A DNA stretch of 64,000 nt from Selaginella moellendorffii. Lineage: Eukaryota; Plantae; Lycopodiophyta. This document shows positions 4,301-52,318 of this stretch, one piece after another (the first letter of the stretch is position 1; each line of letters opens with the position of its first letter). The position numbers and the translations under genes were made by a program. The stretch is taken from NCBI RefSeq assembly GCF_000143415.4, contig NW_003314310.1, positions 738,611-802,610 on the forward strand, read 5' to 3'. The notes under the pieces are model-generated. The model saw only the letters and a program-made list of their open reading frames with translations. It did no database searches and had not been told where the DNA came from.

Positions 4301-6791
4301 TCTCGGGTCCATCTTAGACTCTATCTTAGACTCTATCTTGGGTCCATCTTGAACTCTATCTCGGACTCCATCTTGAGTCCATATTGGACTCCATTTCAGA
4401 CTCCATCTCAAGTCCATCTTGGACTCCATCTTGGGTCCATCTCAGACTCCATCTTGGGTCCATCTCAAACTCCATCTTAGGTCCATCTCAGACTCTATCT
4501 TGGACTCCATCTCAGACTCCATCTCATGTCTATCTTATACTCCATCTTGGGTCCATCTCAAACTCTATCTCGGGTCCATCTTAGACTCCATCTTGAACTC
4601 CATCTTAAGTCCATCTCAGACTCCATCTTGGGTCCATCTCAGACTCCATCTTGGGTCCATCTCAAACTCCATCTTGGGTCCATCTCGGACTCCATCTTAA
4701 ACTCCATCTCGGACTCCATCTCGAGTCCTTCCATGTGTTATGTGTTGGTCCTTTTATGTCCTTTTTTTAGAGACTCATTTATTGCTTGCTTTGTGCTTAT
4801 TCCTCGAGTTCTGCGTTAGGAGTCCACTCCCGCTCTTGACTTTTCGAGTTGGAGATTTTAGTCCATATATGTTACACTCATTTGGCTTCTGCCTCAGCCA
4901 CTACCATGTGGCACCCTTTCAGCTCCTCTTTGGGGCCTAGGGATTTTATGTCTCACAACTCCACCACCCATAGACAAAGTTTGATGTCCTCATTGAATGG
5001 TAAACCATTTTATAAAGTAACACTAGCATATATTACCCTTTTCATCTTTAGCACCAAGCTAATATTTATCAATGGTTGGTCACTGAAGGCTCACTATGCC
5101 TTTCTTATCCTCTAAGGAGTATAGTCTCTCCAACTTAGAAACTCATTAGACCACTTATGGTGGTTTTTTTCCTTTATTAGTTTAGTTCTCGCTAAACCTG
5201 TTAGAGATACCTTTTCTATCTCAATCCCACTACTCATTCTTGAGTAGTTTCAACCTCTATCGATATAACCATTCCTCTTTAAAACTTTTAATCTTGACTT
5301 CTCGAAGTCAATTTTCTAAGTGTCTCCGACACCTTTCATTGCACATATTGTACAAATTCCATATCCCTATCCTAGGAAATTCTCTATTTGAGGGCACTAT
5401 TATCCTCTATTTTATTTCATGCCACCCTTGACACTAAATTTCAGTTATTATAAGTTGTGCTAGAACTGTCCATAGCCCTATCATTTGGCTATCTTGCTGC
5501 TCCCTCCCTTGGAGCTTTCACCTTTGCCAAATTGGAGTATTTTGGAATCCATCCTTGGAAACACACTTTCTTTCTCATAATTCGTTAGCATCCAACACAT
5601 TAGTGTTCCTTGCCTAACTTTATCATTTGGATTCCTTCTAATGAATTCCATGGCCCAAATTTGATCACCACTCTTTTGCTAATATCCATTGATTGTTGTA
5701 CAAAACAATATAAGATCACTACCTCCATCCTTAAGATATTTTTTTGGTTCCATGGCAACGGCTCCACTTTGCTAAGTCCGGAGGGCCTATGTAAGCGACT
5801 AAATTTTCCATTCTACTTTAGTCACTTAACCACACCTCTAACCACTTGGAGGAGTCTCATTCACAACCTCCATAAGTCCAATCCAGGACTTGGGACTTGC
5901 TAGCCCCGAGAATGGCATCCATGCCACTCAACATTTGCACTTGGTCCAAGTGCTCCACGTGTCCGATCCCATGACCGACACTCAAAGGTACCACCGACAT
6001 AGCAGCCCGTTACGCTAAGGCCATGCTCAATCACCTTTGCCACACTGGTAGTCCAATACCACTTGCATCACCGTCTTGGCTCTCCAAGACTAGGCAAACC
6101 ATCCGTCAGTGGTCATCTCAGATCCACTCCTTAGCATCCTTAGGATGCCCACCGACAAGGGGAATAGCCTTCCCCAATATCCCTCTGTCAGTCCCCACTA
6201 AGTCCCTTTCTGCCCCTGGCCATGTTTGCCAACACTGCCACTGGATCGAGACCCACAGGCCCGACCACTAAGTCCCACGATCCTCTGGGACTTCCTCACC
6301 CCACGACTGTGTCCTTGGTCACTACCCCAGAGGACTGCTCCTCTTCCTTTCCACAGTCTGGGCTTTCGGGGCAACATTTTGGAACACCGTGGCCTTACGC
6401 GAGCCACCTGGGTACTCTCCTCGTCTTCTGCCCTTGGGTGCTCTAGCCATGGGCTTAGAGCGAGGTTCCGTTGAGCCACGACAGGTATCCAAGTAGGTAG
6501 TGCCACCCACACTTGGACTGGGAGCATCGGCCAGTCGATCTCCCGGGGGAACTAGAGCCGGCTCTTGAACACTTCACCAAGCTACCCCGCTTGTCGGTCT
6601 GTGTTCACTCTAGTCTTGGACTTCCCAGTGGGCAGCTCATCACCCAACACTGGGTCCGGCCTTCCTGGGCCAAACTGGCCTTTCCTGGCCAAACTGGCTC
6701 CACTGCAGTCCTCCCCCTACTATACTTTTGGAGCTCACCAAACCCCCCAGGGTCTGGGAGACGAACGCTTTGGGCTTTCACCCTCTCAGGC

Positions 6792-6874
6792 TCCGGACTC
6801 GGACTCGGACTCGGACTCGGACTCAGACTCGGACTCGGACTCGGACTCGGGCTCGGTCTCGTTCTCGGTCCCGA

Positions 6875-6908
<34 letters not shown>

Positions 6909-7300
6909 AACTTCGGACTCCATCTCGGACTCCATCTCGGACTCCATCTCGGACTCCATCTCGGGTCCATCTCGGACTCCATCTCGGGTCCATCTCGGAC
7001 TCCATTTCGGGCCATCTCGGACTCCATCTCGGGTCCATCTCGGACTCCATCTCGGACTCCATTTCGGGTCCATCTCGGGTCCACCTCGGACTCCATCTCN
7101 NNNNNNNNNNNNNNNNNNNNNNNNNNNNNNNNNNNNNNNNNNNNNNNNNNNNNNNNNNNNNNNNNNNNNNNNNNNNNNNNNNNNNNNNNNNNNNNNNNNN
7201 NNNNNNNNNNNNNNNNNNNNNNNNNNNNNNNNNNNNNNNNNCTCCAACTCGGGTCCATCTCGGACTCCACTTCGGACTCCAACTTGAGTCCATCTCGGAC
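6792..7300. repeat. LTR-internal satellite: (GGACTC)n-(GGTCTC)n-(GGACTCCATCTC/GGGTCCATCTC)n
   Basis: Directly visible tandem units; contains N gap 7100-7241. Equivalent arrays at ~4150-4730, 12642-13150, 15770-16255, 24400-24712, 27098-27370, 30322-30890, 31795-32500, 39650-40458 and 55258-55395. Confidence 0.95.
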
Positions 7301-9066
7301 ACTTCCACATGTCATGTGTTGGTCCTTTTGGGTCCCTTTTTGGAGCCTCGCTTTTTGCTCGCTTCATGCTCGTTTCTCGAGCACTTCGTTGGGAGTTCCA
7401 CTCCCGCTCTTGACTTTTCAAGTTGGAGCTTTTGGTCCAAACGTGTTATGCTCGTTTGGCTTTCGCTTTGGCCAATACCACATGGCGCCCCTCCGGCTCC
7501 ACTTTGGGGCCTAGGGATTTTGTGTCTCACAACTCCACCACCCATAGACGAAGTTCGATGTCCTCATCGAACGGTAAACCATTTTATAAAGTAACATCCG
7601 CATGTGTTACCATTTCCATCCTTGGCACCTAGCCAATATTTGTCAATGGTTGACATTGAAGGCTCACCATGCCTTTTGCATATTCCTCAATGGTTTGACT
7701 CCAAAGGCTCACCATGCCTTGCCCATCCTCTAAGGAGGGTAGTCTCTCCAACTTAGAGACTGATTAGACCACATGTAGTGGTTCTCTCCTTTCCTTGGTT
7801 TAGTTCTCGCTAAACCTCTTAGAGACCCTTCTCTAAGTCAATCCCGCTACTCCTTCTCGAGTGGTCTCATTTTCCCTCGACATAATCCATGCACCTTGGA
7901 ACTTTTAATTCTGACTTCTCGAAGTCAATTTCCTAGGTGTCTCCGACACCTTGCATTGCACATATTGTGCAACTCCACTTCCTCATCCTAGGAAGTTCTC
8001 CACTTGAGGGCACCATCATCCTCTGTTCGATTTCATGCCACCTTTGTGCACTGAGTTCCAGTTATCATATTTTGGTGCTAGGGCTGTCCATGGCCCTATC
8101 TTTTGGCTACTTTGCCGCTCCCTCACTTGGAGCTTTTACTTCGCCAAATTGGAGCACTTAGGAATCCATCCTTAGAAGTCCACTTCCTTTCCCACAAACC
8201 GTTAGCATCAAACTCATTAGTGTTCCTTGGCTAACTTTGCCATTTGGATCCCTTCCATTAAATTCCATGGCCCAAACTTGGCCACCAGTCCTTTGCTCCT
8301 ACCCTTGATTGTTGCACCCAACAATATAGGATCGCTACCTCCATTTTTGAGGTATCCTTTCGGTTCCATAGCAAAGACTCTTCTTTGCCAAGTTCGGAGG
8401 ATGTTCACCCCTAGCACGTCTCTTTAGCATCTTTTGCTATGGGCTCTATCCACGGCCCAACTTCGTGACCCTCCCATGGGTCTCTTATAGAGACTACTTT
8501 CCTCGGATTCACTATGCCATCGCACGGACATAGTTTATTTCCGTTAGGTGCTCTTCCCACTTGGTCATCATGACCAAGCCACACCACCTTAAACAGTTCA
8601 ATTTTAACATTTTGAACCAGGAACTTCATTCCTTAGCCAACCAAGGACCTTGTCCTCATTTGGCCATAATATCACCTAGTGATCTCACCTTGGCACTTTA
8701 ACAGAGTTGCCAAGAGGTACTTGGTCTTCTAGACCTTCAAGTTGTTGACTATAACCCCGGGGGCATCCCCCACACTTGGCGATGCACCCAAGCCAGCCCT
8801 TACGGCCAAGGGTTCATAGCAACCGAGATTAGGTGTCCCCATCTCGCTCACCACGTCCTTGGTGCCACCTGCACCAAAGCGTTCAAGTTAGATATGCCGA
8901 GCTTTCACACTAAGCAATCTAACCGTGCATCACGACTCCGAGGCATCCCTCGCTTGGCGGTGTGCCCAAACCAGTCTCCCCACTGAGAGTCCATGACCAC
9001 CGAAATATGAGTGTCCTCATATTCCAAACCATCACCACGCCCTAGTGATTTGGGACTCGAACCCAA

Positions 9067-12100: not shown

Positions 12101-12723
12101 CCCACAGGCCCGACTACTAAGTCCCACGGTCCTCTGGGACTTCCTCACCCCACGACTGTGTCCTTGGTCACTACCCCAGAGGACTGCTCCTCTTCCTTTC
12201 CACAGTCTGGGCCTTCGGGGCAACATTTTGGAACACCGTGGCCTTACGCGAGCCACCTGGGTACTCTCCTCGTCTTCTGCCCTTGGGTGCTCTAGCCATG
12301 GGCTTAGAGCGAGGTTCCGTTGAGCCACGACAGGTATCCAAGTAGGTAGTGCCACCCACACTTGGACTGGGAGCATCGGCCAGTCGATCTCCCGGGGGAA
12401 CTAGAGCCGGCTCTTGAACACTTCACCAAGTTACCCCGCTTGTCGGTCTGTGTTCACTCTAGTCTTGGACTTCCCAGTGGGCAGCTCATCACCCAACACT
12501 GGGTCCGGCCTTCCTGGGCCAAACTGGCCTTTCCTGGCCAAACTAGCTCCACTGCAGTCCTCCCCCTACTATACTTTTGGAGCTCACCAAACCCCCCAGG
12601 GTCTGGGAGACGAACGCTTTGGGCTTTCACCCTCTCAGGCTCCGGACTCGGACTCGGACTCGGACTCGGACTCAGACTCGGACTCGGACTCGGACTCGGG
12701 CTCGGTCTCGTTCTCGGTCCCGA

Positions 12724-12757
<34 letters not shown>

Positions 12758-15700
12758 AACTTCGGACTCCATCTCGGACTCCATCTCGGACTCCATCTCG
12801 GACTCCATCTCGGGTCCATCTCGGACTCCATCTCGGGTCCATCTCGGACTCCATTTTGGGTCCATCTCGGACTCCATTTCGGGTCCATCTCGGACTCCAT
12901 CTCGGACTCCATTTCGGGTCCATCTCGGGTCCACCTCGGACTCCATCTCGGACTCCATCTCGGACTCCATTTCGGGTCCATTTCGGGTCCATCTCGGGTC
13001 CACCTCGGACTCCATTTCGGACTCCATCTCGGGTCCATCTCGGACTCCATTTCGGACTCCATCTCGGGTCCATCTCGGACTCCACTTCGGACTCCAACTC
13101 GGGTCCATCTCGGACTCCACTTCGGACTCCAACTTGAGTCCATCTCGGACACTTCCACATGTCATGTGTTGGTCCTTTTGGGTCCCTTTTTGGAGCCTCG
13201 CTTTTTGCTCGCTTCGTGCTCGTTTCTCGAGCACTTCGTTGGGAGTTCCACTCCCGCTCTTGACTTTTCAAGTTGGAGCTTTTGGTCCAAACGTGTTATG
13301 CTCGTTTGGCTTTCGCTTTGGCCAATACCACATGGCGCCCCTCCGGCTCCACTTTGGGGCCTAGGGATTTTGTGTCTCACAGCCTAGTGACTACTTTTTT
13401 GGACTTACCATACCATTGCATTGACATCATTGATTTTCCTTTAGGTGTCTTTCCCATTTAGTCACTTTGACTAAGTCATACTATTACCAACAGTTCAAAT
13501 CACCACTTTGAACTAAAAATCTTATTTCTTAACCAAATAAGAACCTTGTCTTTATTTAGCCACAAGATCACTTAGTGATTTCACTTTAGCACCTTAACAG
13601 ATTTGCCAATAGGTACTAGGTTTTCCAAACTTTTAAATTGTTGACTATGACCCTGGGGGCATCTTCCACACTTGGCGGTGCACCTAAGCAAGCCCTTTCA
13701 ACCAAGGGTCCATAGCAACTGAGACTAAGTGTCTCATCTCATTTACCACGTTCTTGGTGCCACTTTCACCAAAGTGTTCAAATTAAATATGTTAAGCCAT
13801 ATTGAGCAATTTAATCGTGCATCACGACTTCGGGGCATCCCCCACTTGGTTGTGTGCCCAAGTCAATCTCCTTTCTAAAAGTCTATAACCACCGAAAAAA
13901 GAGTGTCCTTATATTCCAAACCATCACCATGCTCTAGTGAGTTGGGACTCAAACTCATGCACTAGAGGGTTGGGATTTGAATCTCTGTATATGCATTTAT
14001 GGATGGTATCACCCAGGATGCCTAGCGTGACTCCTCACGCTAGTGCACCAACTTATATTTAAAGTGCATTACAGATTACAACTTAGGAACTTAGTTCCTC
14101 CATATTGTCAAGTCTTATCATTTGACAAGTCTGTAATCATGCATGGACTTTTCTATGCTTGGCCCCATGGGCCACCCCTTTTGAAGTTAGCACTTTCAAC
14201 TAGGGTATTTGTTCTCCCAACTTGCCAATCTCACTTAGCAAGTCATCCAACCAACATAACATGGCTTCATGCATAAGTGTGAAAGTTCTTGATCATCGAC
14301 TTTCATTTAAAGCTATCCCTTTGAACACTTGGGAACTACTTCCCCAACTTTGATAGCCTTGCCTTATAGTAAGCCGCAAAACCACGCTTCTGCTGCGCCA
14401 CTTTGATTTTGTGCATTCTATGAACCATTTATATTTGGCTTTTTAGGTCTTAAGCTACCTAAAACTGTATTTGGGAACCTTGAAGGAACTCTGTCTCTTA
14501 GTTTGCTAATGTTTCTCATTTTGCAAACTGTTTAATTGCTATATAGTTTAATATGAACAATTCCATACTTTAGACACTCCATGGCATCACAGTTGCTAAT
14601 AAGAACACGCTCGAGCACCCACTTGATTCTCCACTCCGAACTTGCATAACCACCTTTGGTTATGCCTTTCAATTTCTATAGTTTGGTTCTATCCCTTTAC
14701 TACTTGTTTTTGGCTTTATACACTTCTTTCGGTTATTCCAAATTAAGAGGATAGCTTTGCACTTTCTACTATACCTTAGTAAGTATTCTTAGGGATGAAT
14801 TTACCCAATAGCCTAGAGAGTGGTTCCTCAATTTAGATATGCTCACTTTATAATCCCATATACCGGGATTAACATTACTACTTAAGGGCCTTTATATCCC
14901 ATACCAAAATCCCTTTTTGGCTTTGTCAAATTTGGATAGACGAACTTTTCGTGTCTCCGCAACCTTAAACGTTAGATAGCACCTTCTATTAAGGACTTAA
15001 TCCCTTAGGCCTTATCTAATGCCTTCCTGATACTAAACACCATTTCCTAGTGTTTTAGAGTGTTTGGGTGTCTCAATGATGGCCGTTTTTTGACAATGAA
15101 CATTCCCTTTACGACATTGATTTATTATATTACAACATAAACAATTTATCCCCCATAAGGTATATCTATCTTCCTTATCCCAATAAAAAGTTTTGGGTAG
15201 TTAATTTTTACTAATTTAATTAATTATTTTGCATCTTTTGCTTAGTTGCCTTATAATTGTCAAGTCCTACAACTCATTACTAGTGCTTTCACACTTTCAT
15301 CATTATTTGGGTCACCACACTTCAACCACATGCCTTTCAGCTTAAACTATGTCATTCCCATTTCCATTAAGATTCCTTTATGAAGGGGTTCTTATGAACC
15401 CACCAACTTGATCTTAAAGCATCACACTTTGGCCCATTCGGTGTTTCCATACCATTGACTCCACAAGTCTATCTTTATGATACTTCTGTGAGACATAAGA
15501 TCCTTAGGCCCCAAAGTGGAGCTAAAAGAGCACTGTGAGACACAAAATCCCTAGGCCCCAAAGTGGAGCCGAAAGGGTGCCATGTGGTAGTGGCCAAAGC
15601 GAAAGCCAAACGAGTATAACACGTTTGGACTAAAAGCTCCGACTTGAAAAAGTCAAGAATGGGAGTGGAACTCCCAACGAAGTGCTCAAGGAATGAGCAT

Positions 15701-22088: not shown

Positions 22089-22875
22089 TTAAGTCCTCAA
22101 CACTCCCACTCGAGCTAAGCTGGGATCAGCCTTGAGCAACTGCACACCAAGAGCTTGGACATGCTTGGAGAATGCAGCTAGGGGTAGAGCTTTTGTGAAA
22201 ACATCTGCCACTTGATCTCCCGTCGCACAATACACTAGCTCCATTGTCTCCATGGCAACCTGCTCACGAATAAAATGAAACTGTACCTGTATGTGCTTGG
22301 TACGTCCGTGATACTTCAGGTTCTTCGTCAAGGCAATTGCTCCCTGATTATCACAGAAGATAATCGTTGGAGTCTTCTGTGGATAATATACTCCACTCAA
22401 TAGTTGCCTCAGCCAAACACACTCTTTGGCTGCTAAGGTAGTGGCCACGTACTCAGCTTCGGTGCTTGATAGTGCAATTGTTGGCTGCCTTTTACTGCAC
22501 CAAGTAACTGCTCCACTACCAAGGCTGAACATATAGCCTAAAGTGGACTTCCTCTTGTCAACTTCACCAGCCCAATCAGCATCTGAGTATCCAATGAGCT
22601 GAATACCCCTAGGCTGCTGCTTGTAAACAAGACTATAGTTGGCAGTCCCCTTCAAATATCTGAAAATCCGCTTTACTGCTAACCAGTGCTGGTAGCCAGG
22701 ATTTTCCAAGTGCTATGAAACTGCTCCCACTGCATAGGCTATGTCTGGCCTCGTACACACCATCAGGTACACTAAGCTTCCCACCATCTGCCTATATGGG
22801 ATCCGCTTCATATGTTCCTGTTCAGCTGGTGTTGTCGGTGACATATCCTGTGAGAGTTTTAGACCAACCTCCATA
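22089..22875 (-). pseudogene. pol: Copia RT C-terminus and RNase H (orphaned by deletion; one in-frame stop)
   Basis: PYRQMVGSLVYL..TRPDIAYAVG, GYSDADWAG, SSTEAEY, CDNQGAI, HGRTKHI, QVADVFTKAL. TAG at ~22714. The stop codon falls inside the 3' LTR. Confidence 0.9.
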
Positions 22876-23902
22876 GGTAAATCCTCTTGTCGTCTGGAAC
22901 TGGTCTCAGCTTGCCAAACAGCTCTCTGATGTATGTCATGTGCCTGTTTGCTCCTGAGTCCACCCAGATTACTTCTGCTTTCAACAGACCATGTTTTGTC
23001 ACCTGCTGATCCTCTAACGAAGCCATGAACAGACTGCCATGCTCGTCATCTGAATCAGCTGCTGCAAAGTTAGCCACTTGCTTGCCTTTGTCTCGCTTTC
23101 TAGCTTCCTTGGCTTTCTTTGCTTCTTCATTGGTGCAGTCTCTTGCCCAATGACCAGGTTTCTTGCAAATGTTGCAAAGGCCGTCGTTTTTCTTCTTCTT
23201 CTTCTTGGACTTGCTCCCACTGGTTCCATCAGTCCCTGGAGAATTCACTGGGCCCAACCTGTCCCACACTGTTGCAAATCGCTTGCCCTTTGAAGATTGA
23301 CCAGCAAATAGCGCTTGATCTTGAGATCCAACTCCCTCATTGGTCTCCATCAAGATCTCTGCTGACTTCAACTGAAGGACCATTTCGTCAAATTTCTTTG
23401 ACGAGTGAGTAGTCGCTGTTGTCAGAAGATACTTCGCCACGCCTTTGATGACAACCGACTTGAGCTTCGGTTCACTCACTGGTGTCTTCGTGATGCGTGC
23501 GATCTGGCTTGCTACCTTCCTCAACCTTCCAACAAAGGCTTGAATGGACTCACCTTCATGCTGTCTTACAGAACCGAGTTCTGTCTCTAAGTCCAGCAAT
23601 GTGGTCTCATTCTCCTTTCCGAGGGTTGCTTTCAGGTTTTCCCAGTTCTCGTGCGCAGTCTTCGTGATGTCGAGATGGCAACTGAACACCTTGCCCAGGC
23701 CTCTGCCTAGAATGCCCAAGGCCTTGATGTTCTTTCCATCCCACTCTTTGCGGTCAGCCTTGTCCGTTGTGGGAGGGCGCGTCCAGGAACCGTCGACCAC
23801 TGGCCACAGCTCCTTCTGCATAAAGTAGTACTCGAGTTGCTCCTGCCATCCGCTGAAATCCTTGCCATCAAAGATCTCTATGGCGTCGCGCACACTCCCC
23901 AT
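22859..23902 (-). CDS. gag: Copia Gag (CCHC knuckle) plus start of protease
   Basis: 347-aa ORF starting just after the PBS. F-D-G-x-x-F-x-x-W N-terminus, CNICKKPGHWARDC zinc knuckle, protease motif WVDSGANRHMT, then truncation at the deletion junction. Confidence 0.9.
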   Translation of the reverse strand: MGSVRDAIEIFDGKDFSGWQEQLEYYFMQKELWPVVDGSWTRPPTTDKADRKEWDGKNIKALGILGRGLGKVFSCHLDITKTAHENWENLKATLGKENETTLLDLETELGSVRQHEGESIQAFVGRLRKVASQIARITKTPVSEPKLKSVVIKGVAKYLLTTATTHSSKKFDEMVLQLKSAEILMETNEGVGSQDQALFAGQSSKGKRFATVWDRLGPVNSPGTDGTSGSKSKKKKKKNDGLCNICKKPGHWARDCTNEEAKKAKEARKRDKGKQVANFAAADSDDEHGSLFMASLEDQQVTKHGLLKAEVIWVDSGANRHMTYIRELFGKLRPVPDDKRIYLWRLV

Positions 23903-29018: not shown

Positions 29019-30415
29019 TTTAAACAACTAATTTTTCCATTCTACTTTAGTCACTTAACCGCACCTCCAACCACTTGGAGCAATCTCATTCACAACCTCC
29101 ATAAGTCCCATTTAGGACTTGGGGCTTGCTAGCCCCGAGAATGGCATCTATGCCACTCAACCTTAAGTGCTCTATGTGTCCAATCCCCCAAGGTACCACC
29201 GACATATAAGCCCGTTACACTAGGCTATGCTCATTCACCTTGGTCACATCGGTGATCTAACACCACTTGCATTGCAATCCCGTCTCTCCAAGACTGGGCT
29301 ATTCGTCCATGAGTGGTCTGTAAGTGACTAAATTTTCCATTCTACTTTAGTCACTTAACCACACCTCCGACCACTTGGAGGAGTCTCAATCACAACCTCC
29401 ATAAGTCCAATTCAGGACTTAGGACTTGCTAGCCCCGAGAATGGCATCCATGCCACCCAACATTTGCACTTGGTCCAAGTGCTCCACGTGTCCGATCCCA
29501 CGACCGACACTCAAAGGTACCACCGACATAGTAGCCTGTTACGCTAAGGCCATGCCCAATCACCTTTGCCACACTGGTAGTCCAATACCACTTGCATCAC
29601 AGTCTTGGCTCTCCAAGACTAGGTAACCCATCCGTGAGTGGTCATCTCATATCTACTCTTTGGCATCCTTAGGATGCCCACCGACAAGGGGAATAGCCTT
29701 CCCAAATATCCCTCAGTCAGTCCCTATTAAGTCCCTTTCTGCCCCTGGCCGTGTTTGCTGACACTGCCACTGGATCGAGGCCCACAGGCTTGACCACTAA
29801 GTCCCACGGTCCTCTGGGACTTCCTCACCACACGACTGTGTCCTTGGTCACTACCCAGAGGACTGCTCCTCTTCCTTTCCACAGTCTGGGCCTTTGGGAC
29901 AACATTTCGAAACACCGTGGCCTTACGCGAGCCACCTGGGTACTCTCCCCGCCTTTTGCCTTTAGGTGCTCTAGCCATGGGCTTAGAGCGAGGTTCCGTT
30001 GAGCCACGACAGGTATCCAAGTAGGTAGTGCCACCCACACTTGGACTGGGAGCATCGGCCAGTCGATCTCCCGGGGGAACTAGAGCCGGCTCTTGAACAC
30101 TTCACCAAGCTACCCCACTTGTTGGTCTGTGTTCACTCTAGTCTTGGACTTCCCAGTGGGCAGCTCATCACCCAACACTGGGTCCGGCCTTCCTGGGCCA
30201 AACTGGCCTTTCCTGGCCAAACTGGCTCCACTGCAGTCCTCCCCCTTACTATACTTTTGGAGCTCACCAAACCCCCCAGGGTCTGGGAGACGAACGCTTT
30301 GGGCTTTCACCCTCTCAGGCTCTGGACTCGGACTCGGACTCGGACTCGGATTCGGACTCGGATTCGGACTCGGACTCGGACTTGGGCTCGGCCTCGGTCT
30401 CGGTCTCGGTCCCGA

Positions 30416-30447
<32 letters not shown>

Positions 30448-32732
30448 CCGGTCTCGGTCCCGGTCTCGGTCTCGACTTCGGACTCCATCTCGGGTCCATC
30501 TCGGAATCCATCTCGGACTCCATCTCGGGTCCATCTCGGACTCCATCTCGGACTCCATCTCGGGTCCACCTCAGACTCCACCTCGGACTCCATCTCGGGT
30601 CCATCTCGGACTCCATCTCGGACTCCACCTCGGACTCCACCTCGGACTCCATATCGGGTCCATCTCGGACTCCATCTCGGACTCCATTTTGGGTCCATCT
30701 CGGGTCCACCTCGGACTCCACCTCGAACTCCATCTTGGGCTCCATATCGGGTCCATCTCGGACTCCATCTCGGACTCCATTTTGGGTCCATCTCGGGTCC
30801 ACCTCGGACTCCACCTCGGACTCCATCTTGGGGTCCTTCTCAGACTCCACTTCGGACTCCACTTCGGACTCCAACTCGGGCCCATCTCGGACACTTCCAC
30901 GTGTCATGTGTTGGTCCTTTTGGGTCCCTTTTTGGAGCCTCGCCTATGGCTCGCTTCGTGCTCATTCCTCGAGCACTTCGTTGGGAGTTCCACTCCCGCT
31001 CTTGACTTTTTCAAGTCGGAGCTTTTGGTCCAAACGTGTTATGTTCGTTTGGCTTTCGCTTCAGCCACTACCACGTGGCACCCTTTCCGGCTCCACTTTG
31101 GGGCCTAGGGATTTTGTGTCTCACATGGTCATCCTAGATCCACTCCTTAGCATCTTTAGGATGCCGACAAACATGGGGAATAGCTTTTCCCAATATCTCC
31201 GTTTTGGTCCCCCCCAAGTTCCTTTCTGTCCTTGGCTGTGTTCGCCAACACTGCCACTGGGTCAAGGCTCACGGGCCTGACCACTAAGTCCCACTGTCCT
31301 CTAGGACTTCCTCACTGTATGACTGTGTCCTTGGTCACCACACCAAAGGGTTACTCCTCTTCCTTTCCACAATCTGGGACTTTGGGACAACATTTCGGAA
31401 CACCATGGCCCTACGCGGGCCTCATGGGTACTCTCCCCGCCTTCTGCTTTTAGGTGCTCTAGCCAGGGGCTTAGAGCAAGGTTCTATTGAGCCACACCAG
31501 GTATCCAAGTAGGTAGTGCCACCCACACTTGGACTGGGAGCATTAGCCAGTCGATCTCCCGGGGGAACTAGAGCTAGCTCTTAAACACTTCACCAAGCTA
31601 CGCTACTTGTCAATCTGTATTCACTCTAGCATTGGACTTCTCAGTGGTTATCCCATCACCTAGCACCTAGGCACAACCTTCTTGGGCCAAACTAGCATTT
31701 CCTGTCCAAACTAGCTCCACTAGAGTCCTCCCCCTCATTATACTTTTGGAGCTTACCAAACCCCCCTAGGGTCTGGTTTGGGCTTTCACCCTCTCAGACT
31801 CGAACTCCGACTTGGACTTGGACTCGGACTTCGACTCGAACTCAGGCTGGGGCTCGGTCTCGGCCTCAGCCTTGGTCTCAGCCTTGGTCTCGGTCTCGGT
31901 CCCAGTCTCGGTCTCGGTCTCGGTCTCGGTCTCGATCTCGATCTCGACTTTGAACTCCATCTTGGGTCCATCTCAGACTCTATCTCAGACTCCATCTCGG
32001 GTCCATCTCGGAGTCCATCTCGAACTCCATCTCAGACTCCACCTTAGGTCCATCTCGGGTCCATCTCGGACTCCATCTTGGGTCCATCTCAGACTCCACC
32101 TCGGGTCTATCTCGGATCCATCTCAGACTCCATCTTGGGTCCATCTCAGACTCCATCTTAGACTCCATCTTGGACTCCATCTCGGGTCCATCTCGAGTCC
32201 ATCTTGGACTCTATCTCGGACTCCATCTTGGGTCCATCTTAGACTCCATCTTGGACTCCAGCTCGGGTCCATCTCGGACTCCATCTTGGACTCCACCTCG
32301 GGTCCATCTTGGATCCATCTTGAACTCCATCTCAGGTCCATCTCGGACTCCATCTTAGACTCCATCTCAGACTCCATTTCGGGTCTATCTCGGGTCTATC
32401 TCGGACTCCATCTCAGACTCCATCTCGAATTCCATCTCGGACTCCATCTTGGGTCCATCTTGGACTCCATCTCGGACTCCATCTTGGGCCCATCTCAGAC
32501 ACTTCCACGTGTCATGTGTTGGTCCTCTTGTGTCCCTTTTTTAGAGACTCACTTATTGCTTGCTCCGTGCTTGTTCCTTGAGCACTTTGTTGAGAGTTTC
32601 ATTCCCGCTCTCGACCTTTCAAGTCGAAGCTTTTAGTCCAAACGTGTTACGCTTGTTTGGTTTTCGCTTTAGCCACTACCACATAGCACCCTTCTGGCTC
32701 TACTTTGGGGCCTAGGGATCTTGTGTCTCACA
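29019..32732 (-). mobile_element. Family-A solo LTR (host of a nested solo LTR)
   Basis: Starts tttaaacaactaatttttccattc (decayed TGTAAGCGACT), resumes at 31131 after the nested copy and ends tgtgtctcaca at 32732. No matching TSD. Confidence 0.85.
29319..31125 (-). mobile_element. Family-A solo LTR nested in another family-A LTR
   Basis: TGTAAGTGACT...GTCTCACA with perfect TSD TGGTC (29314-29318 / 31126-31130). Confidence 0.93.
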
Positions 32733-43029: not shown

Positions 43030-43645
43030 TCAACCTTGCTGTGTCATGCAAATAGAGGGCATTTGCTCACACCCATCAAACACGTCATTGACCCGGGCCA
43101 GGTCATAGTCTGCACAAGCAGTGATTATGGCTAATGGCATCACATCGAACAGCCTTGTGGTGTCATCTATGCAGCCGCCCTTGGAAAAACCACTAGCATT
43201 GCCAACCATGAAATGAGGCTCCTCTTGGGCATGCCATCGAATAGGTGTTGGATCAAGTGTTATAGTCAGTGGTAGTGACACTATAAGTTCAAGGCATCTA
43301 GGCTTATTGTTTATTAAGCGAACTAAATGGAACAAGTAGAGAACCTGGCTGAAAACTCTCCTGCCCCACCTCGTCTTGCTACAGCTGCTCCCATCCCAGC
43401 TCCTACTACTGCAGCTTGTCTTACCCCAGCTGCTCAAAATGTATGAAGGCAACTCCATCATGAGGATGTTTGAGAGAGTAAAATCATCATGGAAAGAATG
43501 ATTTGTACATTGGCACATAGAGTGGTGGCTGCATTCTCCCATATCTATCACATGACTTACCATCACGAAAGATCTATTCGAAATCAAGTTTTTACTCTCT
43601 TGAACATCCTTGGGATGGAGTTGCCTTCATACTTTTGAGCAGCTT
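43030..43645. pseudogene. Patchwork of PLS-class PPR gene fragments, including a fold-back
   Basis: Minus-strand GCIDDTTRLFDVMP; L-motif-like EGNSI...S...LISN...VIDM. 43428-43483 pairs with 43590-43644. Confidence 0.55.
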
Positions 43646-45469: not shown

Positions 45470-45817
45470 AATGTTTTTTTGGCTTTGCGAACTTCTATAA
45501 GCCATCTCACACAGCACTAGCTTTTCAGCCTTGAGCACTAGACACCAGCCTAGAAATGCAGACCTGGAGGCTGACGTCCATAACATCATACTTTGTTCTA
45601 ACCCACTGTCAAAGAGTCTCTTGACCTGGTGGAGGAAACCACCATTGATACTGACACTGATATCAGGTACCATCTGATAGCAGTGGTGACACCATGTCCC
45701 ACGAGGATGTCCAAGAGAGTAAAAACTTGATTTCTAATAATCTTTCTTATTGTAATTCACTTGTAGATATGGGAGAATGCAGCCACCACTCTGTGTGCCA
45801 ATGTACAAATCATTCTT
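45470..45817. pseudogene. PPR gene remnants; 45700-45817 is an inverted copy of 43493-43612
   Basis: Minus-strand GFLHQVKRLFDSGLEQSMMLWT; plus-strand HEDVQESKNLISNNLSYCNSLVDM. gatatgggagaatgcagccaccactctgtgtgccaatgtacaaatcattc is the reverse complement of ~43497-43546. Confidence 0.6.
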
Positions 45818-47714
45818 CCATCCCTCCCCACCTCTATAGAGGCTGATGCAAGGGTTAGGAATGAACAATACCATTGGCATCAACCTTGCATTCTTTGACT
45901 TTTCCAATGGGTTGCACCTTTACAAAGTAACATTCCATCCTAGAATATCCTTCAACCAGATCATTTTTCTCAAAAGGTGGATGTGGCATCCAAGATTTTG
46001 TAATACAAAGGTATCATGTTAGTCATTCTTTCCCACTTTTTATTCTTTAGAGGTCTTCTTATGACGATGGTGAGAATGATGACTCTAGAGGCTACAGTTA
46101 AGTATCTCAAATGAAATAAAAGGTGTTGGTGGCTGAATTCAAAAGGTTTACATTTCCTTGTTTCTCATATCTTAGATTGATTGCCTCTTTATTGTCAATT
46201 TTAGCATGAAAATATCATGCATTTTGCCACTACTTCTTGATGTCACAATATTACATAGATTAGGGATCACAAGAGATAAGTTCGTAAGCAACTCCCCTCT
46301 TAAGATTGACCACTTGACACCCGTAGTTTCTCCCATCATCTTTTTGCTGGCTTTACTCAAGGCAAAGACCAAGGCTTGAGATAAAGGGCTGTAACAAAGT
46401 TTTTAAAAGTACCTCCAAGTGAAGACCCCTTTTTTCTCTTTGTTGGTTTTGTGTATAACAAAACTTTCTGTTGTGGCTCTTTACTGGTTTCATGCCTTAA
46501 TGAAACTAAGCTCTATTTCGTTAAAGTGGGAATTGTCATTATCCCACTTGTAAAATAAGGTTTCCAAACCTTTATATAGTATATAAATATAACAAAATTC
46601 AACTGCATTGAGGCACATGCCATTTTATTTTAAACAAGGAAATGTCTACTCAATCACTTCTCACTGCTTCACCTCTCTCTTCTCCTTGTCATTGTCGTCC
46701 AATTTCTTTCCATCCTTTTAATATTGGCTCAGTTGCTCCGAGTCTAGGTGGAGCCCAAGTCCCCATTCAATCTTTACTTTCCCCTTATTAATAAAACAAC
46801 TTCGTAGACTTCCAATAACATGCTGTAACACTTCTAGTATAATGCAAATCCTCTCAAAGAATTGTCTTTTAATATTNNNNNNNNNNNNNNNNNNNNNNNN
46901 NNNNNNNNNNNNNNNNNNNNNNNNNNNNNNNNNNNNNNNNNNNNNNNNNNNNNNNNNNNNNNNNNNNNNNNNNNNNNNNNNNNNNNNNNNNNNNNNNNNN
47001 NNNNNNNNNNNNNNNNNNNNNNNNNNNNNNNNNNNNNNNNNNNNNNNNNNNNNNNNNNNNNNNNNNNNNNNNNNNNNNNNNNNNNNNNNNNNNNNNNNNN
47101 NNNNNNNNNNNNNNNNNNNNNNNNNNNNNNNNNNNNNNNNNNNNNNNNNNNNNNNNNNNNNNNNNNNNNNNNNNNNNNNNNNNNNNNNNNNNNNNNNNNN
47201 NNNNNNNNNNNNNNNNNNNNNNNNNNNNNNNNNNNNNNNNNNNNNNNNNNNNNNNNNNNNNNNNNNNNNNNNNNNNNNNNNNNNNNNNNNNNNNNNNNNN
47301 NNNNNNNNNNNNNNNNNNNNNNNNNNNNNNNNNNNNNNNNNNNNNNNNNNNNNNNNNNNNNNNNNNNNNNNNNNNNNNNNNNNNNNNNNNNNNNNNNNNN
47401 NNNNNNNNNNNNNNNNNNNNNNNNNNNNNNNNNNNNNNNNNNNNNNNNNNNNNNNNNNNNNNNNNNNNNNNNNNNNNNNNNNNNNNNNNNNNNNNNNNNN
47501 NNNNNNNNNNNNNNNNNNNNNNNNNNNNNNNNNNNNNNNNNNNNNNNNNNNNNNNNNNNNNNNNNNNNNNNNNNNNNNNNNNNNNNNNNNNNNNNNNNNN
47601 NNNNNNNNNNNNNNNNNNNNNNNNNNNNNNNNNNNNNNNNNNNNNNNNNNNNNNNNNNNNNNNNNNNNNNNNNNNTGCCATAATAAGTACATTTTTAAAT
47701 AAATACATGCCATC

Positions 47715-48577
47715 TCAGACTGTTATTTTTTGCCTCCAACGCCTATACAATAATCTTGGAATTTCATCACTCTCCACACTATCAGGATTTAAACCCAATA
47801 GTAATGCCATCTCTTCTCTAATACGTCCACGCTCATGTTCAGTGGTCGAAGAACCCATCCGGTTGAGCAGATTATGGAGATGCGGATAGTGCTTGGCTAG
47901 ACAATATACATGCCATAAATGATGACTGGTGTCTGTCCGATCAAATGGCTTCTGATATACCGTTCCATCTGCCATTTGGTTGATTTCTGCAGCCACCTCC
48001 TGGACTGGCCGGTTCTCTATCACCATCGCTTCAAGCCGTTTTGCAAGGTCCCCCAGAACATACGGTTTCTTCTCCCTAGTTTCCATACTGCAAGAGATGG
48101 GGTGCACTGCATATGTGTGCGTGTTCGCTGCAGTTTTAATCGGCGAGTCATCGATGATGAGGATTTCACTTGACCTAGCAGTCCGGTTCATCACTACAGC
48201 CTCTGCCTTGACGAAGATGGGCTTGCTACCCCTCACATGGACCATAGTCAAGCAATCCTCCTGCGTTAGGAGAAAGTCAAATGGTAATATTACTCGCGTC
48301 TGATCGTGCATCATCTGTAGCAACGTTAATGCATTGTGGCGCATCATGGATGTCCAAACTCCCAATTGCAAATTGAACCCGGCCCTCTGTTTTAAGTGTC
48401 GCATGGTCATTATTAGATCCCGCAGTTTCTCCCGTGTGATTAATGTGAATCTGTCTCTTTTGACCAACTTGCGACCGCAGGCTTTGGAGGGTGCAGTGAC
48501 ATTCGAGGACGAGCCACGCTCATGGGAGAAAAGGACACCGTTCAGATCAAAAACGATACAGTACTTTCGCCGTGACT
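47715..48577 (-). CDS. FCP1/NIF-type HAD phosphatase-like domain exon (DLNG variant), upstream exon(s) not found
   Basis: IVFDLNGVL (motif I), GVWTS (II), FLLTQEDC, KPIFVK (III), ILIIDDSPIK (IV), uninterrupted to the stop. Preceded on minus by branch point GCTAAC, a pyrimidine tract and a TTTCAG acceptor (48578-48583). Confidence 0.8.
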
Positions 48578-48626
48578 CTGAAATGAAATGCGTTAGCATA
48601 AAAAATAGCAAGACCAGGAAAGTATA

Positions 48627-49320
48627 GTGGCCGGGATTAGACAGCATATTGCCTTCTGGAAGAGGGGGTTGGTGTTTGGTGGAGAATCCTATTTTCAGAG
48701 GTGCAAGCCTTTGCTCGAATACTGGGAGAAGATTATATCTGCTATCCAAAATGGGCCGGTTGTATATGAAGAATTGGAAGAGTCCTTTTGGCCAGAACCC
48801 AGAGCACCAGATAGTAGCGGAACAATGTCCTCTGGAAATGCAGTGACAGATAACGATGTTGAGGATCACTATTGTGGGCCGAGGAACAAGAAGCCGGATT
48901 CAGCATTCAATCCAGTACAGGTCTGCAAAGGAATGGTCGTGCTTGTCAGACCCAGTAATAAAAAACAAATGATATGGGTGGGGCGCTGCATCACTGATGC
49001 AGAGGAGGACGCGGAAACTAACTCCTTCAATGTAACTGTGGAGTGGTTCAAGCCAAGTTCCGGATATACGAAGGATTGCCTAGAAAAGAGATGGGTGCTG
49101 AATCCAAGGGATCCCAGCATGAGCATATCGGTGGATAATGTTGTGCATGGTTGGATGCGGAAGCAGAGTGCCACCATCACCTTGCCAGACCATGCAAGAG
49201 ATGCAGCAAGAGCATTCATAACTCGGGTTCAAGGTGAGATTCATTAATATTCCTTTACAAAGTTTCTAATGTATTTTTTTTCAAGGTGAACAATCCGAAT
49301 CTGAATCAGAGGAGGCTTGA
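48627..49320 (+). CDS. 3' portion of a transposon-borne gene (beta-rich BAH/Tudor-like C-terminal domain plus acidic tail), 5' end missing
   Basis: Open 206-codon frame without an ATG start (YW...FWP...YCGP...FNP...VVLVRP...IWVG...VEWF.P). A predicted GT-AG intron at 49234-49285 gives the C-terminus GEQSESESEEA*. Confidence 0.6.
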
Positions 49321-49535
49321 TATAGTGTGTGAGGTAAAACAAAGATGATGTGACATATGCATTTACCAATCACACATGCATAAATCTAATAATATGGCGT
49401 GTGGCCCATATTAATGGCACATAAACCCATATTGTGGGCTTACGTGCTTTATGTACCATCATTCCCTTGCAGCGTGTGTGTTGGTTTCCTTTTATAACAC
49501 AACGAACTCCATATTTTAGGGTGAAGAGCGTTCTC

Positions 49536-49793
49536 ATGGCAAGCACAAAATCTGTAAGTGAGGCAGAAAAGGAGACAGAGAAGGAGATAGGTGAAGATGT
49601 AGAATATATAAGTCTTCCAAACTCCCCGTACTATACTCCAGGTGATCATTTTTCTGAACAAATGGCAACATTAACAACTATCGAGAACGCCCCAGTAACG
49701 TCAGAGACAACAATCCAAAGCAAAACAACTGACCCGGAGAAGGATGATAGTACTGCCGAGAGTACCAAAAAGGAGGTGTCCACTAGCGCTTAG
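49536..49793 (+). CDS. Short acidic S/T/E-rich ORF (85 aa), possibly a truncated third gene of the TIR element
   Basis: ATG in good context (ctcATGG); protein-like composition MASTKSVSEAEKETEKEIGEDVEY... Confidence 0.35.
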   Translation: MASTKSVSEAEKETEKEIGEDVEYISLPNSPYYTPGDHFSEQMATLTTIENAPVTSETTIQSKTTDPEKDDSTAESTKKEVSTSA

Positions 49794-52318
49794 GCTTATA
49801 ATGGCGTGTGCCCTCATGCCATTTACTTGATCACCAAATACCTTTTTCCCTTTGCACTAGTATATCTTAATACCGGTCTGAGAAATAGAATGGCATGTGC
49901 CCTCAGGCCTTTTACTAAATCACCTTTGAAAGAAATGCAAGCCTCTATGTCGTAAAAAAAAGGTACTAGAGAAATTCCTTAATAATATGAATGTTATTTA
50001 GTTTCATGAAAATACACTAAGGGTCAAATGAGTTAAATGACTTCTCCAGACTAGCAATGCCTCTTGCTACACCTTCACAATTAGATTCGTTAGAAAAAGA
50101 TAACATTGAATAATATCTAAATGTTCTCACCATTAAGTTATATGTCTGGCTAATAGGAATGATGTTCATCTTGGAAAGCTCACCACACGCTCAATGAACA
50201 AACAAATAGTGTGTGCGCGCATGCCATCGCTCTTCTTTAGCTTCAGATTCGGCTTGTTCACCTTGACAATGAGATTTATTATACAACTAGATGGACTCAG
50301 TCTGGACATAAGGTCACCGCGCTAGTCACCATGCCCCAGATATGTCTAGCCCCTGGACAAAAAACATATAATTTCACGTCATTTTCAAATACTTGAAAAT
50401 TTGTACCTAGTCCCATTTTACTGAATAAATCCCACTTTAACGAAATAGAGCTTAACTCAGCTTAGAGTTGGTTTTTCTAGTGAATAAAATACTTATCTAA
50501 CAATATTACACAAGCTGATGAGTATGCAAGCTTGGCACTACCAAGATATGATAGCTCAACAAACATCATCCCAAATGTCATTGGTAAGGACCCTTATCCA
50601 AAGTTCCTTGGCTATCAACACTATTCACCATAGACAACACAAATCCTAGAGCTGGATTATGTTTGATGCTATAATGGATTTTGGCTTGATGGTGTTAGTG
50701 GCTAAGGAGATAAGTTTTGCATTGAAGAGGGAGAGGTGTTCTTGGGACATTTTTAAAAGGTGATAATAAAATTTAAATTTTTCATTATAATAATTTTATC
50801 AATATTAGGTAGATTGACAATATGGGCTATGATTTGCCATGCTATGCAGAAGCAATGGCATAAGCTCACATACAACAAAAGCCCATAATTAGAAGAAAGG
50901 AGTGGATGCTTGCTACTATACTTGCTTGACTTGATCTTACATCCTCTAAAACAACTCCAATTTTACCTCTCTATAACAAGCATACCCATTCCATGAAATG
51001 AGGATTGAAGGACTTGAGTCACTCTTCTCTCTCATTCTTTATGTGATTGTTTGTGTCTAGCTAAAGTAGAGTGCAAGAAGGCTTTTATTGAGGTTGTGAA
51101 CAATGATAGGTTTGGTATCACTTGAGAACTTTGGATTTTGAGCGTGTGGATGTATATTGATGATGGAAGGCCAAAATACAAAAGAAGTGGGATAGGGTTT
51201 GAGTGTTAACTTGCCCTCTTAACTAATCTAACATGGTGGCAACCGCCACTTTTTCTTGTTCTTGAGTCTCAAAGTTGGAGTCTTGAGACTCAAAATGATG
51301 CTTCTAAATGTAAGGTTGATTTCTTGTGCTCCACTTTTCTCCTACGATTGAATTGAGTTTCATCTCAAAGCTCTTATTACTCCATAGCATCAGGCTGTTT
51401 TGTTGCTATTGGGACTCTAGAGAGTTCGTTCTTGAACTTGTCGAGCTTCTATCGGAACTCATCATTGTCATCGTTATGATCACTCTCATTATCAGCATCC
51501 ATGACAATTGGTGGCTGCTTCACCTTGAGCTATCAGATCTTGTTGTGAAGTTCTACATTCTCCTCAAATACTCTTCTTGAGCTGGAGAATGTCACTCTAG
51601 ATCTTCTTCGTGAGCTTTGCGTCAAGGGGCTAGTAGACAATGGCATTGATCATAGCCTGGACTCTGTCTTACATGAAAACACTCATCTACTTATTGTGGA
51701 AAAGCCTTGTAAAATCTGCTGGTATCAACATCTATAGCGTTGGTTGGAGACACTACATTTCGTCCACAAACTAAAGAAATGCTGAGCTTAAAATCCAGGG
51801 AGTTAATCTCTAGGTCAAGCTTAAAACTTAATAAATATGGAATGGTGCTAAATTACAAAATTAGAAGTAAAAATAACATTGTTGTGTTCAAAAAATTCTC
51901 TATATTCTATAGATATACCCAACTAGCAGATTTAAACACTTTCCATAAATAACCAATAGGACTGGAATGGGATCAACACAAAAGGCATGATCGTGAGAGT
52001 AAATACGGTAAACTATCATTTAATAGGTATTAAAGGATAAATCTCAATATCACAGGGGCTCCTACCACTAATAAGCCAAAAACATGAGTTTCTCATCACC
52101 ATATCAAATATGTTTGATTAATGACAACTTAGGATTTCCTTTTTTAGTGTCCTTCCAGTCTAAGTGCATATATAATGACTAGTTTCTCAATTAACTTATG
52201 TGGAGACTAATAAAGGGTCTAACAATACTGACCTCATGTTGTTGTGGCAATAAAAAAAGAATATCTAAAAGGACTAGTTAATAGGTAACTTTTGATATCT
52301 ACAATCACATTCGTAACA

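Follow-up and report, generated by a model that had tools for sequence, protein, structure and literature searches.

A probable non-autonomous two-gene DNA transposon carrying an NIF/FCP1-fold exon in Selaginella moellendorffii

In the algal element Sola1-1_Ec32 of Ectocarpus, a ParB-methylase gene lies on the strand opposite the transposase (PMC12477816, 2025), and red-algal Plavaka elements combine a ParB-like accessory gene with inverted-repeat arrays (bioRxiv 10.1101/2025.02.11.637652). Here, we describe a DNA transposon remnant in a 64,000-nucleotide stretch of the Selaginella moellendorffii genome (contig NW_003314310.1, positions 738,611–802,610; hereafter the window, to which all coordinates refer). 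It resembles both algal systems in having terminal inverted repeats (TIRs), genes on opposite strands, repeated palindromic sites of its own, and a possible 4-bp target-site duplication (TSD), and may share a further likeness, in that a role at the DNA or chromatin of the element itself is proposed for their accessory proteins. In contrast to them, the present copy lacks a transposase core and ParB-like and methylase domains, its centre being lost, and its host is a land plant rather than an alga. The surviving accessory exon has neither a ParB-like nor a methylase domain, with NIF as its sole Pfam match, and the NIF/FCP1-like HAD module that it encodes is mentioned in neither PMC12477816 nor bioRxiv 10.1101/2025.02.11.637652.

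In our judgement, 46508–50453 is probably a single non-autonomous, internally deleted insertion of a two-gene cut-and-paste element whose NIF domain was recruited long ago. As assembled, the element spans ∼3.9 kb, its true length being hidden by an assembly gap. The parent, probably of Sola1-like type, would have paired a transposase gene with a divergently transcribed accessory gene whose product ended in an NIF/FCP1-fold domain, resembling phosphatases of the RNA polymerase II C-terminal domain (CTD). This domain would have been recruited long ago from a cellular subfamily with a D-x-N-G motif, and 24-nt quasi-palindromes near the ends were probably bound by one of the element's own proteins. 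With the centre deleted, the promoters of the two genes, the catalytic exons of the transposase, and the N-terminal part of the accessory protein would have been lost, leaving the last accessory exon and the last two transposase-side exons head to head over 34 nt, between two ends that retain their sites. The features on which this reading is built are as follows.

46504–46507, no strand: candidate TSD, left copy (AACT), if the element is 46508–50453
46507–46534, plus: left TIR, 27/28 complementary to 50427–50454
46601–46624, minus: 24-nt site, decayed left subterminal copy, 5 mismatches to consensus
46877–47675, no strand: assembly gap (799 N), in non-coding left-end sequence 3′ of the NIF stop codon
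47715–48578, minus: last exon of the accessory gene, NIF/FCP1-fold HAD domain (residues 1–165) and helical C-terminal extension of ∼120 aa
48579–48612, no strand: 34-nt junction between two acceptor sites, presumed deletion scar of abutting intron remnants, placed from the exon starts
48613–49233, plus: penultimate exon of the transposase-side gene, helical linker and beta-barrel, possibly PWWP/BAH-like
49234–49285, plus: candidate 52-nt GT..AG intron, from sequence
49286–49320, plus: candidate last exon, acidic tail ...EQSESESEEA and stop
49800–49823, plus: 24-nt site, best copy
49889–49912, plus: 24-nt site, second copy, 2 mismatches
50205–50228, plus: 24-nt site, decayed third right-hand copy
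50427–50454, minus: right TIR, pairing with the left TIR
50454–50457, no strand: candidate TSD, right copy (AACT), if the element is 46508–50453

Termini, target site, and repeated sites

The TIR arms (46507–46534 and 50427–50454) are 28 nt long and complementary at 27 of 28 positions, the initial 25 being perfect, in agreement with a preliminary description of the locus made from the letters alone. Within the window, the terminal 25-mer occurs solely at the two element ends, against an expectation of 0 (0 in 100 shuffles). When the termini are taken as AAGCTC...GAGCTT (46508–50453), a perfect 4-bp AACT stands on either flank, which suggests this boundary for the element. This reading had been overlooked; the two proposed earlier pair AGCT termini with TA or TAAG termini with AC as 2-bp TSDs, and both fit the flanks of this single copy. 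The termini had also been described as unlike those of CACTA, hAT, Mutator, and PIF elements; on inspection of the flanks by eye, duplications of 8 bp (hAT), 9–11 bp (Mutator), or 3 bp (CACTA/PIF) did not fit. Neither a second copy nor an empty site was found in the 64-kb window, and a search of metagenome contigs with the TIR pattern gave 0 matches.

The inner edge of the left TIR carries a short hairpin (46525–46548), formed by AAGTGGGA and, after an interval of 8 nt, its reverse complement TCCCACTT. The right end has no such hairpin because, compared with the left end, it carries an indel of ∼10 nt; past that indel, GTAAAAT is common to both. In the left flank, ∼125 nt (45697–45821) are 89% identical, in inverted orientation, to 43489–43615, 2 kb upstream.

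Repeated palindromic sites specific to the element comprise four 24-nt sites and eight half-sites. Each 24-nt quasi-palindrome has arms AATGGCRTG and CATGCCATT separated by a 6-nt spacer, and the subterminal repeat reported earlier, ATGGCRTGTGCCCTCA, corresponds to the left arm plus spacer. Its reported orientation was borne out: the left-end site is inverted relative to the three right-end sites, and the half-site within this decayed left copy is exact (46616–46623). Within the element (3,149 read bases), the half-site ATGGCRTG was counted 8 times, as opposed to 2 times in the rest of the window (59,910 bases; Poisson P ∼3e-13).

Observed/expected CpG ratios are 0.63 for 47676–50454, 0.79 for the NIF exon, and 0.40 for the left end, compared with 0.45 in the upstream and 0.20 in the downstream flank. 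The interior, described earlier as CpG-rich, is thus less decayed than its flanks, although it is not CpG-rich in absolute terms. Between the assembly gap and the NIF stop codon (47715–47717) lie 37 read bases (47676–47712); the gap-crossing entries in the list of open reading frames (ORFs) consist of X only, and no real reading frame is cut. We assign both ends to one insertion because the TIRs match and the flanking AACT matches, which are the sole support for this link.

Two gene ends facing each other

The minus-strand exon (47715–48578) is open for 287 codons, as the preliminary description had it, and ends in a stop codon at 47715–47717, its last base on that strand being 47715. It begins at an acceptor (...tttcag at 48579/48578), which a CTAAC branch-like site precedes. 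Pfam NIF (PF03031) matches the exon at 26.2 bits (cutoff 21.8, E 7.5e-6). An exhaustive phmmer search of 1.84 billion representatives returned 12 matches at E ≤ 1e-3, the best at 7e-7, with identities of 27–41%; no relative above 41% identity or below E 1e-10 was present among these representatives. All ten phmmer relatives that we scanned (10/10) are PF03031 NIF proteins. An AlphaFold (AF2) model built on the relatives' alignment reached a predicted local distance difference test score (pLDDT) of 73.5 and a predicted template modelling score (pTM) of 0.69, and Foldseek placed it with Scp1 (best, E 5.9e-9), CTDNEP1, UBLCP1, Fcp1, and Tim50, with template modelling (TM) scores by target of 0.6–0.7. 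The exon therefore encodes a genuine NIF/FCP1-fold domain, as first supposed. A word search with the exon recovered no relatives among candidates of 158–504 aa, and a sequence search of the PDB gave no match.

Motif I of the exon is DLNGV instead of the canonical D-x-D-x-T/V, the second Asp being replaced by Asn. The same D-x-N-G is present in 10/10 independent relatives in the alignment, and all 14 columns invariant across these ten are kept by the window protein (D11, N13, G14, R49, W75, N82, Q106, K119, K124, D143, D144, K148, N152, and P160). The motif II Ser (S77), motif III Lys (K119/K124), and motif IV DD (D143–D144) are also conserved. By this signature, DLNGV marks a distinct, uncharacterised D-x-N-G subfamily, much as the earlier reading of the motif had suggested. 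The relatives are named ‘FCP1-like domain-containing’ or TIM50-like (Morus, Sphagnum), and the rest are unnamed metagenome proteins.

D-x-N-G NIF proteins are encoded at 37 metagenome loci, which add nothing to the motif evidence because they were picked by the motif itself. Neighbours in the three metagenome loci examined are cellular genes (short-chain dehydrogenase, CCHC protein, ankyrin protein, PCO_ADO, and ThiF). On two marine picoeukaryote-like contigs (L001 and L008), a PCO_ADO gene, of the cysteine oxidase family, is found 1.4–2.2 kb away from the D-x-N-G NIF gene, an adjacency that may point to a cellular gene with conserved synteny. The NIF domain of the element thus appears, from sequence comparison, to descend from the cellular D-x-N-G branch, well preserved and distant from known host genes. 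We regard a recent capture from the host as very unlikely, because the best relatives among the 1.84 billion representatives are 27–41% identical.

On the plus strand, the 3′ end of a spliced gene had been recognised, and our model agrees: 48613–49233 is open and is followed by a candidate intron and a last exon with a stop codon. This model was searched exon by exon. A 253-aa UniParc entry (P0001) is identical to the plus exon at 206 of 207 residues (99%); its 41 N-terminal residues have no counterpart in the window, and its gene model continues through the candidate 52-nt intron. Word searches with the plus exon and with P0001 recovered P0001 alone, Pfam searches of the plus exon, P0001, and a 119-aa ORF gave nothing meaningful, and a sequence search of the PDB with the plus-strand protein gave no match. 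In the protein Atlas, residues 130–253 of P0001 align structurally with the C-terminal end of a 550-aa plant cluster, 85% of which carries DUF7869 (TM 0.79 by query), and more weakly with BAH domains; language-model features of the plus-strand protein point weakly to PWWP. These structural comparisons fit a beta-barrel, possibly chromatin-reader-like end of the family's transposase, which is the weakest link in our reading.

Two further features lie close to this gene end. The 119-aa ORF (49434–49793, plus strand) is Ser/Thr/Glu-rich and lies downstream of the plus-gene stop and ahead of the first palindromic site; it may be either an alternative 3′ exon or an ORF arising by chance. In addition, 49278–49305, which covers the end of the candidate intron and the start of the last plus exon, recurs in reverse complement (26/28) at 50242–50269, at a distance of 185 nt from the right end, and this 28-nt inverted repeat may represent a small inverted duplication or a regulatory hairpin.

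The two genes had been said to meet back to back near 48625. They in fact meet at 48579–48612 and stand head to head, with their 5′ ends facing. Because both start at acceptors 34 nt apart, their 5′ exons and promoters are missing, and neither gene, as far as the sequence can be read, would be expressible from its own promoter in this copy. The best reading, we infer, is that the copy is a non-autonomous internal-deletion derivative of a two-gene element. The preliminary description had likewise proposed an internal-deletion derivative of a multi-gene, divergent element, and both the 34-nt spacing of the acceptors and the absence from the window of P0001's 41 N-terminal residues agree with it. 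Internal deletions are the usual outcome of interrupted gap repair following excision of cut-and-paste elements. With its centre missing, the copy would be mobile only if a full copy supplied the transposase.

Classification and competing explanations

A 4-bp TSD is the length found in the Sola superfamily (PMC3627910; PMC3845634), and the published target preference of Sola1 is AWWT/AWDT (PMC3845634). Counted from the AAGCTC terminus, comparison of the TIR with an insect Sola1 TIR (PMC3845634) places AAAGTGG exactly in register at positions 16–22, with 13 of 28 positions agreeing overall; a match of this type arises by chance at ∼8e-4 per position in the window. The present copy resembles the insect Sola1_NA miniature inverted-repeat transposable elements (PMC3845634) in being non-autonomous, with TIRs of ∼28–36 nt, a 4-bp TSD (a candidate one here), and AAAGTGG at 16–22. 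It differs from them in its AACT target (versus AWWT/AWDT), in agreeing at 13 of 28 TIR positions, and in its coding remnants, which the insect derivatives lack. Taken together, the candidate 4-bp TSD, AAAGTGG at TIR positions 16–22, and the DUF7869-like C-terminus point indirectly to an element that is probably Sola1-like; the earlier label of ‘unclassified’ was probably too strong.

Several points weigh against a deleted, Sola1-like element. AACT, with C at the third position and seen at a single insertion, misses AWWT/AWDT, and 2-bp TSDs also fit. Apart from P0001, searches of Pfam, the PDB, and protein sequences brought up no relatives of the plus-strand protein; the AF2 model of P0001 made without an alignment was poor (pLDDT 42), so that the transposase link of the plus gene hangs on one Atlas structural match. 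The deletion is deduced from the acceptors rather than read from an alignment to a parent copy, and both breakpoints falling ∼34 nt from two acceptors would be a coincidence under random deletion. P0001 could also be an allele, or another assembly, of this same locus with its first exon in the gap.

In one competing explanation, the element belongs to another or undescribed superfamily with a 2-bp TSD. The likeness to Sola1 would then be coincidental, and an internal deletion could still hold. Both TA and AC fit the flanks, AACT breaks the published preference, the insect likeness amounts to 13/28 positions with one 7-mer in register (∼8e-4 per position), and the copy has no transposase catalytic domain. 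Against this, the 4-bp reading requires two extra matching bases and both do match, and the plus-strand protein provides a structural lead to DUF7869 proteins; we regard another superfamily as unlikely, though worth serious consideration. The gap and the junction also admit an undeleted, compact element with interleaved genes, in which one or more plus-strand 5′ exons lie in the gap, the NIF exon is intronic to the plus-strand gene, and the NIF 5′ exons lie to the right of 49320. The 41 extra N-terminal residues of P0001 could fit into the 799 unread bases, and the acceptor sites are intact, but the arrangement requires introns of at least ∼1 kb, whereas the visible candidate intron measures 52 nt, and no plausible minus-strand exons occur to the right of 49320. 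We consider interleaving distinctly improbable.

The remaining explanations deny that the NIF exon belonged to the element, or that there is an element. A Pack-type capture, in which an unrelated TIR element holds one host NIF fragment drifting neutrally, would account for a single NIF-gene exon without a promoter and draws on a cellular D-x-N-G subfamily that does exist in plants (Morus, Sphagnum). The high similarity to a host gene that such a capture implies was, however, not found in the protein databases searched (best identity 27–41%, lowest E 7e-7), and an open frame of 287 codons with 14/14 subfamily-invariant residues is hard to square with neutral drift, so that we give this explanation very little weight. 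That the locus holds no transposon at all, and merely two host gene fragments between a chance inverted repeat, could be argued from the single copy visible in the window, yet it is scarcely credible given a 25-nt perfect inverted repeat (0 in 100 shuffles), enriched sites of the element's own, matching flanking bases, and a 99% identical protein whose 5′ part differs.

Outside the element, the window contains an LTR retrotransposon remnant, recognised from an ORF on the minus strand (22859–23902) that encodes a copia-type gag with a CCHC zinc knuckle and the start of the Pol beta-barrel domain. Three GC-rich stretches (6513–7594, 12362–13387, and 30041–31280) show strong negative GC skew and long multi-frame ORFs on both strands without Pfam matches. 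Near-identical peptides from 6675–6737 and 12524–12586 indicate that these stretches are repeat copies ∼5.85 kb apart. A second assembly gap lies at 7100–7241.

An NIF module in a transposon

The NIF exon resembles Scp1, CTDNEP1, UBLCP1, Fcp1, and the pseudo-phosphatase Tim50 in its predicted fold, including a beta-hairpin insertion after motif I, and shares the nucleophile Asp, motif II Ser, Lys, and DD motif with FCP1/SCP phosphatases. It differs from these in having D-x-N-G-V for D-x-D-x-T, a helical C-terminal extension of ∼120 aa, and no sequence-level PDB match. With the cellular D-x-N-G subfamily (Morus; picoeukaryote proteins of 200–280 aa) it shares all 14 invariant residues. The cellular genes stand alone amid housekeeping neighbours, whereas the NIF exon forms the 3′ end of a transposon gene, with 23–33% identity to them.

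Since N13 would take the place of the general acid/base Asp, the NIF-like domain is predicted to act as a phosphatase whose turnover is altered or slowed, or else as a module that binds phospho-substrates. The preliminary description went further and proposed a (pseudo)phosphatase that could modulate host transcription or silencing, a role that we regard as purely speculative. A more specific version, in which the D-x-N-G NIF module is tethered through the 24-nt palindromes and acts on phospho-CTD or chromatin proteins to favour transcription or blunt silencing, is doubtful, and we offer it as a conjecture. A literature search returned nothing relevant for NIF domains in transposable elements, for DUF7869, or for the DLNG motif.

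To our knowledge, few transposons carry accessory genes that act on the chromatin of the element itself, VANDAL anti-silencing factors and the algal ParB-methylase genes being the known examples. A CTD-phosphatase-like module in a two-gene, probably Sola1-type element of a land plant is probably new at the family level. The present copy offers a clean NIF exon, a proposal for the boundary and TSD, and an example of decay into non-autonomous derivatives. If the tethering conjecture is true, the NIF module would amount to a transposon-encoded phospho-signalling counter-defence, new to the literature searched. A CTD-phosphatase-like accessory module in a land plant would lengthen the list of chromatin-acting accessory genes, and would offer a handle on the uncharacterised, eukaryote-wide D-x-N-G branch of the FCP1/SCP family.

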